A DNA stretch of 64,000 nucleotides from Oikopleura dioica (Eukaryota > Animalia > Chordata), in the NCBI GenBank assembly GCA_907165135.1, contig OU015566.1, positions 1,178,001 to 1,242,000 on the forward strand, given 5' to 3'. The position numbers were made by a program, and so were the translations under genes. Shown here in pieces: positions 11,162-18,942 of the stretch. Position 1 is the stretch's first letter. Every line of letters begins with the position of its first letter. The notes beneath the pieces were generated by a model. The model worked only from the letters and a program-made list of their open reading frames with translations, was not told the DNA's origin and searched no databases.

Positions 11162-13912
11162 ATGAAGCTTTCGCCGATTTTACTCGCTGCTGGTGCTTCA
11201 GGAGTGTTTTAAAAGATGGTTTGGTCGTTTAAAATAATTTTTTCGATAAGAATTTTCCTAAAAAATGAGCGTTCTCTATCGACCCCAGCCTTAATTTTCT
11301 AAATTTCATTTTAAGTATGACTTTTACTATAAATAACTTTTCCTCATTATCCCCAGCGGAGATACTTTTGAAGTCTTTATCCTATTCCTGATCGCATTTA
11401 ATTAAGGGAAAACAGAGAGGTCCCTGCTACTTATTCCGTGTTTTTAAAAACAACACAAGCAGCATGTTTCATTTTCTTGATAAAAACAAGAGAAACGCGA
11501 GTTCTAACCGTATTTATGGTTATAATGCCGCTTTCATTGTTCGTTTGAAGGAGCATCTTTTCGAGTTTATGGTCGTTCCAAGGTGGCTAAGAGACCAGAG
11601 ATTTTTTAATAATCGGATTCAATTTTAAAAACACATTCGATTAATAAATTGAATAAGGCACAAAGGAACAAAATCGTTTTGGCGTTGTCTTCGTAGAAAA
11701 AAAAATGTAATCGAAGAAAATTTGGATAAAGTTGAAAATTTGAGAGGAGGCTAGAATTATTGCTTAAGGGGGTAGAAACATTTTTCTCGATGTTGTACTC
11801 TAGCTACATAAAAGAAAACATCATTACATTTATTTAAATTTATTTACATTTACATATATTTGAATAAAATTTGTTTTCCTATTACGTGACTCGGAGTATT
11901 CGAGGCTGAAAATGTAAGAAAATCAAGAATTTCGTAGAGATGAGTTGCTTCTGAGCCCCATTTCTCAAAAATTTGATCATTAAAACAAAATTTCGAGGGA
12001 GATGTTCCTAGATCTAAGATGTTTCTATCTAAATATGAAGAGAAAAATAGAAAATCTAAGATTTTTTTGTCTGTAGCGCCAGTCGAAATGCGCTTATTTT
12101 CGAAAAAAGCTGTTTCTACCCCCTTAAATCCAAGACCCTTCAGATAAAATTTTTGGGGGACGGGCGGCTACGTTAAAAATTTGTAACGCTGTTACAATTT
12201 TGTAACGCCGTTACAAAAACTCAGATTTTTTACGCAATAAAAATTATTTTCCATCCCGTAATCATTTTTATTTTAGACAGAATAAGTATAACAATAAGCA
12301 GGTATACCAAAAAGTAGTTTACTTTAATTCAAGCGCGAAGCGCACACTCGTTCAATGATTTTGATTTTGAATTTTTGTAACGCCGTTACAATTTTTCTAC
12401 TTGTAACGTAGCCGCCCTACACCTAATTTTTTCTCTAGTTAAAAATTGAGAAGATAAAGTTCATAGAGTCACTTGTGTACGATTAAAATGGAATATCTTG
12501 CCAATATTTCCCCAAACACAGTCATAAACCATGAGTTCTTTATTCCACTTGTTTTTGGTATTTCGATTAATGTTGATGAAAACAATCAGGAGTCTTGCTC
12601 ATTTCTTTCTTTTTATTTTGTAAATAAAAAATGAACCAAATAATTTGTTTCCACTTTATTACGGAATTCAGCGTAATTACAATAGAAAAAAGCGCTAAAT
12701 GACCTAGAAAGCAGAAAACCTCTAAAAGAACTATTTTCTACGAAAAAAAAAACATTAAAAATCACGAGTCAAAGTTGACTTAATAAAAATGAAGGTGATG
12801 AAAAAGTAGAGTGAAAAGGTTAATTTATCTCAGCTCAATTTCGTCCTCGAAAGTTTTCAAATTTCAAGAGAAGTCGGAATTTTCGGAATTATCATTTGTC
12901 AAAAACACGCAAAAGCCGATTGCCCAGAAATCCTCAACGAAAATGGCTGGGACAACCCAACACCAGGGAAGCTCTCACCAAGCATGCGTTATCCACTTGG
13001 CCTGAGCTCCGAGCGAACTCAAACTGTCAAGTACCAAATTAAAAAGTACGGCCTTCACGAATCCGCTTATCTCGGCTTCTTGACCTTCAACGGCTACCAC
13101 TGCGGCGAGGATTTCATCAACAAGGCCCTTGTTGATGGCCGCATCAAATTGGACATTGTTGACACTCAATACGTTTACGCGTTCAATTCTACGACCAGTT
13201 ACGAGACGCTCAAGGAATCATCGCTGACTGGGCGATATGTCGATCGAAGAACTTACCAATTTGTGTACGTAATATTTCGATGATTATTTCACAAATAAAT
13301 TTTTAGCGCTCGACCTCGGCCAGATGATTTCTCTGGAAACAAGTGGGGAGTCGGGAACAACAAATGGGTCGACACTCTCAGTGTCACTTTCAACGGTCTT
13401 GACAAAGTCGAGTGGGGCGAGCGCAGCATGACCAATTGTCTTCAAAAAGTGAAGCTCGGATTCACGTCCGATGAAGACTTCACTGGACGAGCATACTACG
13501 ATGGCGAGGATTTCACCCCCTGCATCTTTCCTTCTGATAACGTTGTGACGACAACGACCCCACAAGGGCCAACGACGACGACGACTCCTCAAGGACCAAC
13601 GACGACTACTCCACAGGGACCAACGACGACAACGACTCCACAGGGGCCGACGACAACAACAACTCCAGGAAGCGGGCAGATAAGAACTCTATGTTTTGAA
13701 GCGATCCATGCTTTCCGGGGTCCTCCGGAAGTATCAAATTGCGTTCTTGAATTTGTTTTTTGAGCCCGTTGCAAGGTGAATTCACTCACAATGGCGATGG
13801 AACTGGTGGCAACGCTCCACAATACCGAGCTTATGTTGCAGTCAATGGCGAGGAGAACGTTGCTGCCATTGGGATAGTGTTACAATTTTCTCGAGAAAAG
13901 ATAAGAGAATAA
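11162..13912 (+). CDS. Secreted mucin-like protein (N-terminal globular region plus TTTTPQGP repeats)
   Basis: Signal exon MKLSPILLAAGAS joined (GA-AG 11202-12915, inferred) to ADCPEILNENGWDNP..; intron 13265-13306 (GT-AG); four to five TTTTPQGP units at ~13545-13668; intron 13669-13775 (GA-AG). C-terminus ambiguous. Confidence 0.65.
11768..12123. mobile_element. TTAA-flanked MITE family C (GGGGGTAGAAAC termini)
   Basis: TTAA|GGGGGTAGAAAC...GTTTCTACCCCC|TTAA; right part similar to 63752-64000 and 48921-49631. Confidence 0.8.
12162..12417. mobile_element. MITE with TIR GGGCGGCTACGTTA and TGTAACG subterminal repeats
   Basis: GGGCGGCTACGTTA / TAACGTAGCCGCCC inverted ends; internal TTGTAACGCCGTTACAA palindromes. 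Confidence 0.75.
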
Positions 13913-16028
13913 TGTCGTGGAAGCTAAAGGAATGCAAAAATTTGTTCAAGCATTATCGCGTGGTGAAAGCTGTTTTGACGTTGATCGTGATTGCTATTTT
14001 GATCGTTTTGGTTGTTGTTTTTGAAGTTCCTTTATGATCGGATTCAGAATTATTTTTAAAGCTAAATTAGAACCTTTTTCTAAGTGCCTTCGTTTTTTTT
14101 TATAAATATTTTGATATTTGATGATTCTGATATGATAACACAATCATGAATCTTTTCAATAGCCACACCAGCAGATGATGAATATGATTATGATGACGAT
14201 CGCATTTTTGATCGAAGGGTTGAGTCAAACGATTCCACACCAGCCGCATAGCCGAGTCGAGAGTCATCACAAAATACGATTTATTTTTAAAATTATTTCT
14301 TGCTTATTTACATATGTATCTCTTTTCAATATATTTTACTAATTTTTTATATGTGAGATTTCTGATTCAAAGCAAAGATCGGATATAAGACAGTATATCG
14401 GCGTTTTAGATGTCGATTCGTTCGGGTAAAGAATTCTCTCTCTAAACATGTAACACAAACAAAGACACGGCCCTCATGCTGCTGATGGCCAACTTCTTTC
14501 AAACGGCGGATATGTCGCGACCGGTATCTCCAGCGCAACAGAGGGCGGTCAAGTTGGAATCGGCTGGGTCGCTCGGGTCGATCCCTGCCCGAACCCAGAC
14601 AGTTACGAAAACACGCTGGGAACCATGCTCACTGGAGCTGGATCAAACTGCGCGACGAAATTCAAGTGGGCTTGGAAGCAGGCTAGCGGTGGAAAACATA
14701 CTCATATGGTCTCGGTCAAAGAAAGTCCCGATGGAACATATGTTCTTGCCGCTGGATTGAGAAAGTCGAGCAGTAATGGTAAGATTTTTTTTTTGTCTCT
14801 TTTTCTGTTCTTTCATAATCCTTGTTAAAAATAAGAGAAATAGGCAAGAGAGAATGAAGATCAGAAGAAGAAGATTCCTCGTCGAAATCATCTCACGATA
14901 ACTCTAGAATACAACGGCTACGTGGTAAAACTTGACGTCGAAACCGGAAACCTCATCTGGGACTTCGACTTCACTTCTGGCTCCGGCGTTCGATCGGGGT
15001 TCGAGACGATTCATTTCACATCTGACGGAGGCTTTATCGTTGGCGGCTTCTCTCATCGGGAATGGGAAGAGCATCCTTATTTCAAATCAGGAGGACAGGT
15101 TGACAATGGTCGCCCAGTTTTGCATAAATTCAGCGCTGAAATTGCGAATGCTGCTACTGTTTCTGATCCAATGCCGGAATGGACTTATAGATGTGGCGCT
15201 GTGGGAACGACCTGTGATCTTAACGATGGATCGATGAAAAATGCACGGGTGTATTTTGACGATGGGGTTGAAAAAATCGTTGCTCTTCCTGTCTGGCGAA
15301 CGATCTTCATCATTATCAATGCTCAGACTGGGGAAGAGCTGATCTACTCTGGCGATGCAATCAACTCCGGCTTCACAGATGATGGAATCGCGAATGATGT
15401 CGAAGTCGAATTCGACGATTCCGGCGCTGTGATGGGTTTCGTCACTACAGGCTTTCGAATAACAACTGTTTCAACTGATAACGGGATGCCGTGTTCTCAT
15501 GCAGAGGACGGAAAATGCGGCGTCTTCCATGGCTTCTTTGCGAAATACAGCAAGAGTCTTGACCAGCGACTTTGGAGAACCACTTTCAATACTGGCGATT
15601 GGCCCGGAGGAGCTGGGCAGTTCAAGGACCTCGAAGCAAGTGCTTACAAATCGTTGGTTTACACCGAGTGCTGGGGCATGACAAAAGTCACAGGTCCAAC
15701 TGGCCATGTCGGATACGCTGCAGCTTGCGGCTCGGGAATCGAAGGTTGCGACATTCACGGAGAAATTCCCTGCGAAAACGATCCAAGAACCACTTGGCGA
15801 GGAGCTGTTCCGAGAATTGACCGAGAGGGAAATCTCGTCTGGTACCGGCTTGATTCTTTCCGTGGCCTTTTTGACGATGGCGAGACGGTAACAGATGATG
15901 TTTCGGAATCTGCTTCGGAGTACATTTTCGAGGACAAATTCGGAAGGATCGTCTCAGTTACCGATGAAGGAATGGGCGGAGTTGGGTTTTTAACCTACGA
16001 ATGCGAAGATGGAATCACTTGTTTCTGA
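13912..16028 (+). CDS. Beta-propeller repeat protein, 3' module A; probable N-terminal type II membrane anchor
   Basis: Exons 14465-14778 (HGPHAADG..SPDGTYVLAAG) and 14908-16028 (GYVVKLDVETGNLIWD, TSDGGFIVGG, IDREGNLVWYR); introns 14426-14464 and 14779-14907 are GT-AG. Linkage to the upstream MSWKLKECK..AVLTLIVIAILIVLVVVF exon is inferred. Confidence 0.75.
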
Positions 16029-16172
16029 AAATTTCTCTGATTTCGCATTCTCTGATTTCTCATTAGGAATAATAAGCAATAAAAACTGAACAGTTTTGAA
16101 TGAGTGAAAACATGTCCAGTCTTGTCTCGAAAATTCATCGAAGAAGTATATTACTAATCAAAAAATATTTAG

Positions 16173-17506
16173 CTTACAATGGATACGTTGCGAAAATCAA
16201 CATCAACACTGGCGCTACGATCTGGGACTTCGACTACAAAACGAATTCTGGAACTCGATCTGGCTTCGAAACAGTCCACTTCACTTCGGATGGCGGTTTC
16301 ATCGTTGGAGGTTTCACACATCGAGTCGACGTTGAAATGCCTGGCTTCAAATCGGGCGGACAAGTCGACCAAGGACGACCTGTCATGCACAAGTTCAGCG
16401 CTCAAACCGCCAATTCTGCTTCGGTCTCGAATCCAACGCCAGTCTGGACCTACAGCTGCGCCTCTGGCTCCAACAGCTGTCAGCTTGACGACGGTTCGGT
16501 CAAGAACATGCGAGTCTACATGGACAATGGGGTCGAAAAAGTCGTTGGTCTTCCCACAAGCCGAACAGTCTTCATCAACTTGAACGCCAACAACGGTAAC
16601 GAGCTCATCTACTCCGGCGACGGAATCAACAGTGGACACATTGGCGACGGAACCGCCAATGACGTCGAGGTTGAATATGACGATGCTGGTAATGTGATTG
16701 GTTTCGTCACTACTGGCTTGAGAGTCACGAAGATCCAGAGCGACAATGGCGTCGGCTGCGGAGCTCAAGAAGACGGATGCTCGGTGATCAAGGAAAAGGG
16801 CACGATTTCTTATTTCAAACTAAATAAACTTGAATTAATGACTCTTAGTAGTTGAGCGAAGGCCACGTTTGAAAATTCTCACTTTGTTCATACTTGAGTG
16901 ATAATCGATTTGAGTCCTTCTTAGGGTGTTTTTACGAAGTACAACAAAGCACTTACTCAGCGAGTGTGGCGACAAGCGTTTAACACTGGAGAATGGCCAG
17001 GAGGAGCTGGACAGTATGATCTTTTCATTCATGCAGAACTTGTTCATTCTGTTTAGATTTTCTTCTGTCTCCGCGACTCCGTACAAGTCCCTTGTCTACA
17101 CAGAATGCTGGGGCTTGACAAAAGTGATGAACAACGGTGTCCATGTCGGCTATGCTGCAGCTTGTGGTTCTGGTGTCGAGCCTGGCTGCGATATCCACAC
17201 CGGGGCGATCAAAACTGCTTGCCAAAACGATGTCAGGAACGGGTTTTTGATACAAAAAGACAATTTTTTCTAAAAAAATATTGATAAAAAATACCCTAAA
17301 AAAGAAAAGCCTGGCGAGGGGCCGTCACTAGAATCGATCGCGCAGGAAACTTGGTCTGGTACCGACTGGATTCGTGGTTCTGGTCAGCAAATGAGAGAGG
17401 AGAATCAGCTTCGGAGTACATCTTCCAAGATGCCAGCGATAGAATCGTCTCTGTAACAGATGAAGGATTCGGTGGTTTTGGATTCCTGACTTATGATTCC
17501 TCATAA
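16173..17506 (+). CDS. Beta-propeller 3' module B (tandem paralog of 14908-16028, no own 5' exons)
   Basis: Starts at acceptor ttag|CT TAC AAT GGA, homologous to ctag|AA TAC AAC GGC in module A; collinear residues throughout; introns 16793-16924 (GA-AG), 17014-17056 (GT-AG) and ~17237-17310; ends GFGFLTYDSS*. Confidence 0.75.
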
Positions 17507-17572
17507 AGTCGTGTGTAACTGATAATAGAATGAATAAACTCAAGGTGTTGAAAAAGACTTTTATTGAATAAA

Positions 17573-17776
17573 TTAAAGATGCAATTGGAAAGAATGATCA
17601 GAATCGTGCTCGCTGAAACTCGTGAATTGTGACAAAGATGACATTCCGTTGATTAAATAGTCGATTCTTGCTCTGAGAAAAGGGTATTCAGCTAAAGACT
17701 GCGCGATTCTCTCGTTCAAAGAAAGAGTTTTTCTCGCTCCAAGGGCCAAAGAAACTAGTAAAAAAAGAAAACGCAT
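17573..17776 (-). CDS. Small secreted protein (67 aa)
   Basis: Clear signal peptide MRFLFLLVSLALG; single exon; AATAAA motif near the 3' end. Confidence 0.5.
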   Translation of the reverse strand: MRFLFLLVSLALGARKTLSLNERIAQSLAEYPFLRARIDYLINGMSSLSQFTSFSEHDSDHSFQLHL

Positions 17777-17894
17777 CTTTTCTTCTCTTCTTGAAAAATG
17801 AGCTCTTTTTATATATTTTTTGATTGAGTGCTAGTCTGCTGAGCGTCGTCTTGTCAGATAGACTACCGAGATTGTCTTATTAACGTCGATTAAA

Positions 17895-18942
17895 TGAAGG
17901 CCAGGATAGAATTTTTAATTAACAAATAGCTGAAAAGGTATTCTCTGACAGGAATACCTGGCTGAAATGGATTAAAAGGCCAGTTTTAATCACATTTACA
18001 AATCCGAGACTTCCCAAAATCCTTACTTTTAACAAATCCCATTTTGCCCTTCAGATTTCCGTTAATCCTTGAGCTGCTATTCCCTAAGAAGCGTTCGTTC
18101 AGAAAAGAGCTAGAAGGGCTCCTGTTTCTTTACGTAGCCCAAGGGGACAAGCAACAGATTAGGCCAAATTAATTCTACGCCGCTTCTTTTTTTCGCGTTC
18201 TTTTCCATTCTAGATCTCTTTCAAAAACACGCTTCTTCTCTTAGTCCACTTGAATTCACGAAAAATGAGCAGCCTGAAAGAAAGACTTTTAAAGCTCTTT
18301 GGCTGTTTTACGGCAAAAGAGAATGATGAACCAGAACCGATTAAAAGAGGAGAAATATCAGGTCAAAGGCTAGAGAATCAAAGTTCCGAAAATGAATTAT
18401 AGAATCGTGGTCGCATTGGAGAATAATCATCATCGACAAAAACGGAGAAAAGGAAGCTGATCCTAATCTGTACACTCGGCTCGGAAGGGTCAAAATCAAG
18501 TTCAAGCAAGAATGTTTCAGCGTTTCTACAATTCTAAACTCGATTTTCAACATAAACAATGTCTCAAAAGATAGAGAAATCAAAGCAAAGCTGATTTCTA
18601 TCCTTTTTTCATCTGGAAAGGGTCTTTTTTAGTTGGAAATAACTGGATAAAGCTTGAAAAAGACCTTCATAAGTGATGATAGAAACGAAAGAGTGCATTA
18701 TGCGATCGAATCCGAAAGTAATTTCCAATAGCGAGAGGATCGCTTTCATCAAAAATCCTCCGAAAATCAAGTGGCTGAAAGAAAATCGCGAGGAATTCGA
18801 CCTAGAGGAAGCTATTAACAATTTCTTCCAGGTAAAATCAATTCCCTCAAGGCTCCTGTGTAGCAACCTGAGCAGAAGGCTGAGTCAGGGCTCTAGCAGA
18901 AGTTCCTCTAAACTGAGAAGAAACCCTGACTCAGAATTCTAA
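17895..18942 (+). CDS. Hypothetical protein exons (one or two genes)
   Basis: Protein-like frames MSSLKERLLKLFGCFTAKENDEPEPIK and IKNPPKIKWLKENREEFDLEEAINNFFQ|gtaaa; model unresolved. Confidence 0.3.

Follow-up and report, generated by a model that had tools for sequence, protein, structure and literature searches.

Tandem Terminal Modules in the Okinawa Oikosin 17b Gene of Oikopleura dioica and Their Probable Alternative Splicing to One Shared Exon

A Single Shared Exon Precedes Two Paralogous Modules

We analyzed a window of 64,000 nucleotides of the Oikopleura dioica genome (assembly GCA_907165135.1, contig OU015566.1, positions 1,178,001 to 1,242,000 of the forward strand), and all coordinates below refer to this window. 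Judged by sequence, the window contains the Okinawa ortholog of Oikosin 17b (OKI2018_I69 chr1.g227), whose 3' part consists of two tandemly duplicated modules, A and B, behind a single shared exon, E3. This tandem-module anatomy is real and non-random. The one donor at 14778, at the end of E3, probably serves A or B alternatively, which would yield two proteins that begin alike and differ in the body of the propeller. The gene was already known, and its proposed architecture is of a known type, alternative 3' terminal modules from tandem duplication.

In the proposed mechanism, common 5' exons encoding a signal peptide, an N-terminal domain, a linker, and E3 would precede two anciently duplicated 3' modules. 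By the first route, 14778 would be spliced to 14908 and the transcript would end at the polyadenylation signal after A. By the second route, A would be skipped and 14778 joined to 16173, leading into the four exons of B. An exon-by-exon phase walk found both routes in frame, with 760 amino acids (aa) via A and 750 aa via B. The outcome would be two house proteins whose beta-propellers share their first 1.5 blades but not the other 5.5.

The original prediction, made from the letters alone, had described A and B as collinear paralogs that begin at the same codon with the same phase-1 acceptor, and the alignments bear this out. A tblastn search of the window with module A returned A itself (14910-16025) and, in collinear order, three segments of B (16175-17017, 17055-17237, and 17300-17500) with 54-61% identity and E 8e-122. 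The protein identity between the modules is about 55-65%, with 65% over the first 206 codons. Both acceptors comprise an AG and two bases closing a codon, followed by YNGYV; the junction residue is glutamate (E) in module A and alanine (A) in module B. The interval between the stop of A and the acceptor of B, predicted at about 145 bp, is 144 bp long. As also predicted, no copy of the 5' exons lies between the modules, and no second copy of E3 was found within the window. Genome-wide, four E3 copies serve five modules, and the other three belong to ordinary single-module paralogs.

The sequence G/GTAAGA at 14778 is the sole upstream donor in that phase. The locus thus has one common donor and two same-phase acceptors, and each module carries its own stop and a polyadenylation signal, both conserved in a second lineage (lineage X, below). 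In the lineage X contig L017, a gene caller used an in-frame ATG in the intron between E3 and A; the corresponding ATG of the window lies in another frame, with a stop behind it.

Selection and the Ends of the Modules

Lineage X is represented by two contigs, L017 (ENA assembly) and L019 (Logan assembly), which are 97.5% identical to each other and both have the order E3-A-B. The ratio of nonsynonymous to synonymous substitution rates (dN/dS, omega) was low for E3 and for both modules (Table 1), with 0.084 for A and 0.030 for B, which argues that both modules are translated and under strong purifying selection. Their intact appearance, noted in the original prediction, is confirmed, both modules being open. 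That only one module is used, the other being a silent or decaying partial duplicate, is scarcely credible, as both open reading frames (ORFs) are intact in two lineages at a dS of 0.5-0.8 and with omega of 0.03 and 0.08. No reads fitting the locus were found on either module, as a dead module would lead one to expect, although the runs are of another lineage and hence uninformative on this point. The dN/dS between A and B, which had been proposed as a check, was computed as well; the synonymous sites are saturated (proportion of synonymous differences, pS, 0.74), so the value is uninformative.

The end of module A reads I-T-C-F-stop in the window and in lineage X, and the four differences between them (ATC/ATT, TGT/TGC, TTC/TTT, and TGA/TAA) are all synonymous or stop-preserving. 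Insertions and deletions (indels) relative to lineage X start right past the stop of A; some 50 nt further on, a block with AATAAA is kept in the otherwise diverged, indel-bearing spacer. This conservation of the terminal Cys-Phe-stop and of the AATAAA block indicates that A would be read to its own stop, with a 3' end signal behind it.

The public annotation proposes another structure. In the model chr1.g227.t1 (1121 aa), a donor T/GTTTCT at 16020/16021, 5 nt before the stop of A, joins the acceptor of B, and E3, A, and B follow one another in one protein. The annotated proteins P0027 and P0026 show precisely this A-to-B structure, the annotation used RNA sequencing (RNA-seq) hints, and the donor at 16020 has phase 1, the same as the E3 donor. 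However, the junction is a canonical GT-AG, and a gene predictor could insert it unaided to connect B exons that were hinted but had no start. The donor is also weak, and it reads GC in lineage X through a synonymous change (TGT>TGC). Under the fusion alone, the conservation of the Cys-Phe-stop and of the AATAAA behind A has no explanation, and B would miss the 1.5 blades supplied by E3, hence forming an incomplete propeller. Additionally, two modules occur in no other family member found. We regard the serial protein as unlikely, and the annotated 1121-aa A-B fusion is probably an error in the public Okinawa annotation.

Module B might also be transcribed separately from a promoter of its own, or be a downstream cistron released by trans-splicing; translation would then start at an ATG that lies either in the spacer or within B. 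In-frame ATGs are present at 16100 and 16112 in the window, and O. dioica has spliced-leader trans-splicing and operons. The original prediction had named a trans-spliced start such as 16100, together with a missing 14778>16173 junction, as one finding that would count against alternative splicing. However, the alignments of the window with lineage X contain no conserved in-frame start ahead of B: ATG 16100 is missing in lineage X, and a 10-nt indel puts ATG 16112 into another frame there. ATG 16179 is out of frame and not conserved either. The acceptor of B and an upstream ACTAATC, which is possibly a branch site, are both kept in lineage X. The product of a separate unit would have neither the signal peptide nor the first 1.5 blades, and in Bergen, E3 and the ortholog of B are joined. 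We consider a separate unit for B very unlikely.

Propeller Structure

AlphaFold2 was applied to the annotated E3 plus A stretch (P0026:284-760) with 19 homologs. The resulting model has a predicted local distance difference test score (pLDDT) of 85, a predicted template modeling score (pTM) of 0.88, and 28 strands. Foldseek and VIA-align matched it to full seven-bladed propellers from model residue 1-2 to 470 or beyond (to 477) with Z of 29-30, and the predicted model thus superposes on solved propellers with its 28 strand elements. E3 and one module are therefore predicted to form one seven-bladed beta-propeller, in which E3 gives 1.5 blades and the module 5.5; the blade assignment was drawn from the strand list and the aligned ranges.

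E3 corresponds to model residues 1-104, and strands 92-102 and 105-114 flank the exon junction (104/105) as a hairpin with a two-residue turn between them. Since the splice junction falls within a blade, each module would need E3 to close the ring. The shared exon had been taken for a separate anchor in front of the propeller, whereas the model makes it the first 1.5 blades of the same propeller. A Pfam profile search gave nothing above threshold, including WD40, PQQ, and SBBP; the only match was PQQ_2 (E 0.084, 12.9 bits versus a cutoff of 27.6). In the literature, oik17b was reported without similarity to known proteins (Hosp et al. 2012, PMC3390340). Four relatives with 30-42% identity (P0007, P0010, P0020, and P0025) lie outside the named Oikopleura proteins, one of them from Cymbomonas tetramitiformis.

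The Bergen Lineage and the History of the Duplication

The Bergen genome locus (L018, FN653021) has E3, a 170-bp intron, and then B directly; module A is absent, and no relic of it was found in the Bergen E3-B intron. Two Bergen-lineage proteins, P0036 (752 aa) and P0042 (389 aa), carry ...GLRKSTSS/AYNGYVAK..., the exact counterpart of a 14778>16173 junction. The Bergen reference Oikosin 17b (P0002, 628 aa; L018 6001-8851) has no signal peptide, and its E3 donor (...VLAA/AYNGY) lies earlier than in P0036 and P0042; P0002 is probably an incomplete or mis-spliced model.

A tree built on the first exon of the modules places the window gene and the Bergen copy in one Oik17b clade (support 97/94), and A of the window and of L017 falls within it on a long branch. 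In the best tree, the B copies all form one group and A lies outside it (support 76/88), and on this basis A would have been lost in Bergen. The alternative, a clade of A with the Okinawa-lineage B, which would mean that A originated after the split, was not rejected by the approximately unbiased test (p-AU 0.10). Read from these trees, A goes back to an old tandem duplication of the 17b module and was either lost in Bergen or arose later with fast divergence.

Among the approximately 25 family members found, none has two modules in tandem, the Okinawa gene prediction excepted. One further model, P0046 (OKI2018_I69 chr1.g2367, 767 aa; paralog at C4:8879840-8881463), opens with some 290 residues unmatched among the other members found and continues with an Oik17-type propeller; it may be another merged gene model.

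RNA Evidence and the Weighing of the Splice Routes

Four RNA runs labeled with the same species were aligned to 13700-18400. The alignment gave no joints, and all 99 aligned reads fit only in part. The overhanging read ends encode peptides of the Oik17a-type paralog P0005, and against the Okinawa paralog locus they show 4 mismatches in 30. The runs come from another cryptic lineage, and their blank therefore says nothing about the window locus. A scan of Joint Genome Institute metagenomes with module A returned only a paralog of 60% identity and no A-type transcript, and protein word searches (length of at least 205 aa) found no Okinawa-lineage protein joining E3 to B.

Several observations weigh against alternative use of the two modules. 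Neither 14778>14908 nor 14778>16173 was seen in Okinawa-lineage RNA, the RNA runs compared being of another lineage, and the only proteins seen with the E3-to-B junction are of the Bergen lineage, which has no A. The annotated models chr1.g227.t1 and t2 join A to B and offer no E3-to-B isoform. The argument for a functional stop of A leans on just four substitutions. Finally, an E3-to-B intron of 1394 nt is long compared with the reported genome median of 49 bp; the annotated model of the same gene has a 1.7-kb intron, which places this length within range.

The OKI2018_I69 annotation drew on RNA-seq intron and exon hints (PMC8008620). The GA-AG introns in B would presumably have needed such hints, which suggests that B is transcribed in Okinawan animals.

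Despite these points, alternative use of A and B is the reading that we favor. Both modules are constrained and have the same phase-1 acceptor and start codon behind a single E3. The stop and AATAAA of A are conserved, B has no conserved start, and the predicted fold needs E3. In addition, the Bergen-lineage ortholog joins E3 to B, and tandem modules are known from no other family member. The predicted choice of donor 14778 between A and B is thus the structure best supported by comparative evidence, with the annotated A-to-B splice as its rival. The two junctions in the Okinawa lineage, together with any specificity of cell field or stage, are what we infer from this evidence.

Gene Identity, Product, and 5' Exons

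The closest named relative of the gene is P0002 (UniRef name Oikosin 17b). Compared with Bergen, E3 has 79% identity and the B exons have 78-85%. Oikosins belong to the protein components of the filter-feeding house, 17a and 17b carry separate accessions (17b HE774607), and 17b was placed among the products of the giant Fol cells of the oikoplastic epithelium in Bergen animals (Hosp et al. 2012, PMC3390340). The original prediction had proposed a variant receptor or adhesin pair, whereas the gene encodes a secreted house protein by this assignment.

The OKI2018_I69 annotation and the 752-aa Bergen-lineage protein P0036, whose source is a 2.3-kb contig that is nearly all coding, concur on the 5' part, which comprises the signal peptide, the N-terminal domain, a Thr/Pro-rich linker, exon (i), and E3. 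The N-terminus of exon 1 is the same in P0036, and the junction AAIG/HGPHAADG, from exon (i) to E3, was found in P0026/P0027 and in P0036. The product is therefore predicted to be a secreted protein, not a membrane-anchored receptor, in which the propeller is preceded by the signal peptide, the N-terminal domain, and the mucin-like linker. The coordinates of all features are given in Table 1.

Table 1. Exons, modules, and signals of the Okinawa Oikosin 17b gene in the window.
Feature	Position	Strand	Content	Comparison
Exon 1	11162..11201	+	Start codon and signal peptide (MKLSPILLAAGAS...); GA donor	Maps to P0026/P0027 (chr1.g227)
Exon 2	12916..13264	+	N-terminal domain	81% identical to Bergen locus L018
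Exon 3	13307..13668	+	Remainder of N-terminal domain and Thr/Pro-rich mucin-like linker (PQGPTTTT repeats); GA donor	
Exon 4, exon (i)	13776..13872	+	...NGDGTGGNAPQYRAYVAVNGEENVAAIG; GA donor; spliced to E3 in the supported model	94% protein identity to Bergen
Shared exon E3	14465..14778	+	HGPHAADG...GLRKSSSN; phase-1 donor G/GTAAGA; blade 1 and first two strands of blade 2 (predicted)	Lineage X: omega 0.14, dS 0.45, 104 codons; donor conserved
E3-A intron	14779..14907	+	GT-AG, 129 nt	
Module A	14908..16028	+	Single terminal exon, 373 codons and TGA (16026-16028); blades 2b-7 (predicted)	Lineage X (L017): omega 0.084, dS 0.79, 372 codons
A-B spacer	16029..16172	+	144 bp; 3' untranslated region of A, conserved ACTAATC, acceptor of B	
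AATAAA after A	16078..16083	+	Candidate polyadenylation signal	Hexamer and block behind it conserved in lineage X
Module B exon 1	16173..16792	+	Phase-1 acceptor; GA donor	Omega 0.038 vs. L019; 78% protein identity to Bergen Oik17b
Module B exon 2	16925..17013	+		Zero amino-acid changes vs. L019
Module B exon 3	17057..17236	+	GA donor	
Module B exon 4	17305..17506	+	TAA stop (17504-17506)	AATAAA at 17533 conserved
Module B, four exons				Lineage X: omega 0.030, dS 0.49, 360 codons

The introns of B are 16793-16924 (GA-AG), 17014-17056 (GT-AG), and 17237-17304 (GA-AG). Including two of these, five introns of the gene start with GA (GA-AG; 11202, 13669, 13873, 16793, and 17237). The GA-AG introns within B are kept in lineage X, and Bergen has neither B intron 1 nor B intron 3. 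Just past the polyadenylation signal of B, the segment 17560-17700 is about 90% identical to lineage X, above the level of the introns, and it overlaps a minus-strand ORF (17573-17776).

Two further elements lie in the intron between exon (i) and E3. One is a second, diverged copy of exon (i), named (i'), in two pieces (14163-14218 and 14373-14425). It has the same outgoing phase into E3 as exon (i) and a canonical GT donor, and its first piece differs from lineage X mostly synonymously. The Bergen reference model P0002 takes the (i') counterpart, and P0036 and the Okinawa annotation take exon (i). Exons (i) and (i') may be a mutually exclusive exon pair.

The other element is a 41-aa ORF with a transmembrane segment (MSWKLKECKN..., 13912-14037), located between exons (i) and (i'). 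The original prediction had given the product an N-terminal anchor; this ORF, from 13912, is intronic in the supported model, and the 5' exons from 11162 encode a signal peptide instead. It is kept in Bergen L018 (6693-6803) with 59% protein identity and a DNA identity that is higher in the first 60 nt. No donor of the right phase joining it to the next conserved exon was found within the window. The ORF may encode a micropeptide or serve as an alternative first exon.

Significance

The larvacean house is built by oikosins and matters in marine carbon flux, and the locus bears on how its composition diversifies. If A and B are used alternatively, a house protein would have diversified through alternative 3' modules rather than through separate paralogs, and splicing would exchange most of a closed propeller yet keep its first blades. 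The presence or absence of module A separates cryptic lineages of O. dioica, with Bergen on the side that has no A. For the public resources, the locus flags a probable error in the Okinawa annotation and an N-terminally truncated reference model in Bergen.

A wider reading is put forward tentatively. One Okinawan house-protein gene could make two secreted propellers that swap 5.5 of the seven blades by the choice of 3' module, and this module pair would be present in some cryptic lineages but not in Bergen. The second exon pair and the transmembrane ORF might add isoforms, one of them membrane-anchored. House composition would then vary between cell fields and between cryptic species by splicing, not by gene number.

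Comparison with Known Systems

Bergen Oikosin 17b (P0002; full-length P0036) shares with the window gene the N-terminal domain, the linker, exon (i), E3, and B, with 78-94% identity by part, and its E3-to-B junction falls at the same codon as the putative 14778>16173 in the window. It differs in the absence of module A from its locus and of introns 1 and 3 from its module B. The OKI2018_I69 models chr1.g227.t1 and t2 (P0027 and P0026) represent the same locus, with the same 5' exons and the same exon borders within B; they differ from the favored model in that A is fused to B, with neither an A-terminated nor an A-skipping isoform.

The Oikosin 17a-type paralogs (P0004 = OKI chr2.g4330, P0005, and P0023) have the same architecture of linker and E3-plus-module propeller, but they are separate genes with a single module each. 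FNADGTGG, the peptide encoded by the published primer for Oik17a, occurs in P0005, and 17a and 17b are thus paralogous genes, not isoforms. At the level of structure, WDR55, RACK1, and the C-terminal domain of CylK have the same fold as the E3 plus A model (Z 29-30, root-mean-square deviation 2.4-3.5 A, 288-335 residues aligned), with only 10-14% identity; the common fold is silent on function.

The Drosophila genes lola, mod(mdg4), and broad have alternative 3' terminal modules behind common 5' exons. Unlike these, the Oikosin 17b gene has only two modules, and they would replace 5.5 of the seven blades of one closed domain rather than a self-contained domain. Like them, it combines common 5' exons and one donor with paralogous 3' modules from tandem duplication that each bring a stop and a polyadenylation signal of their own.

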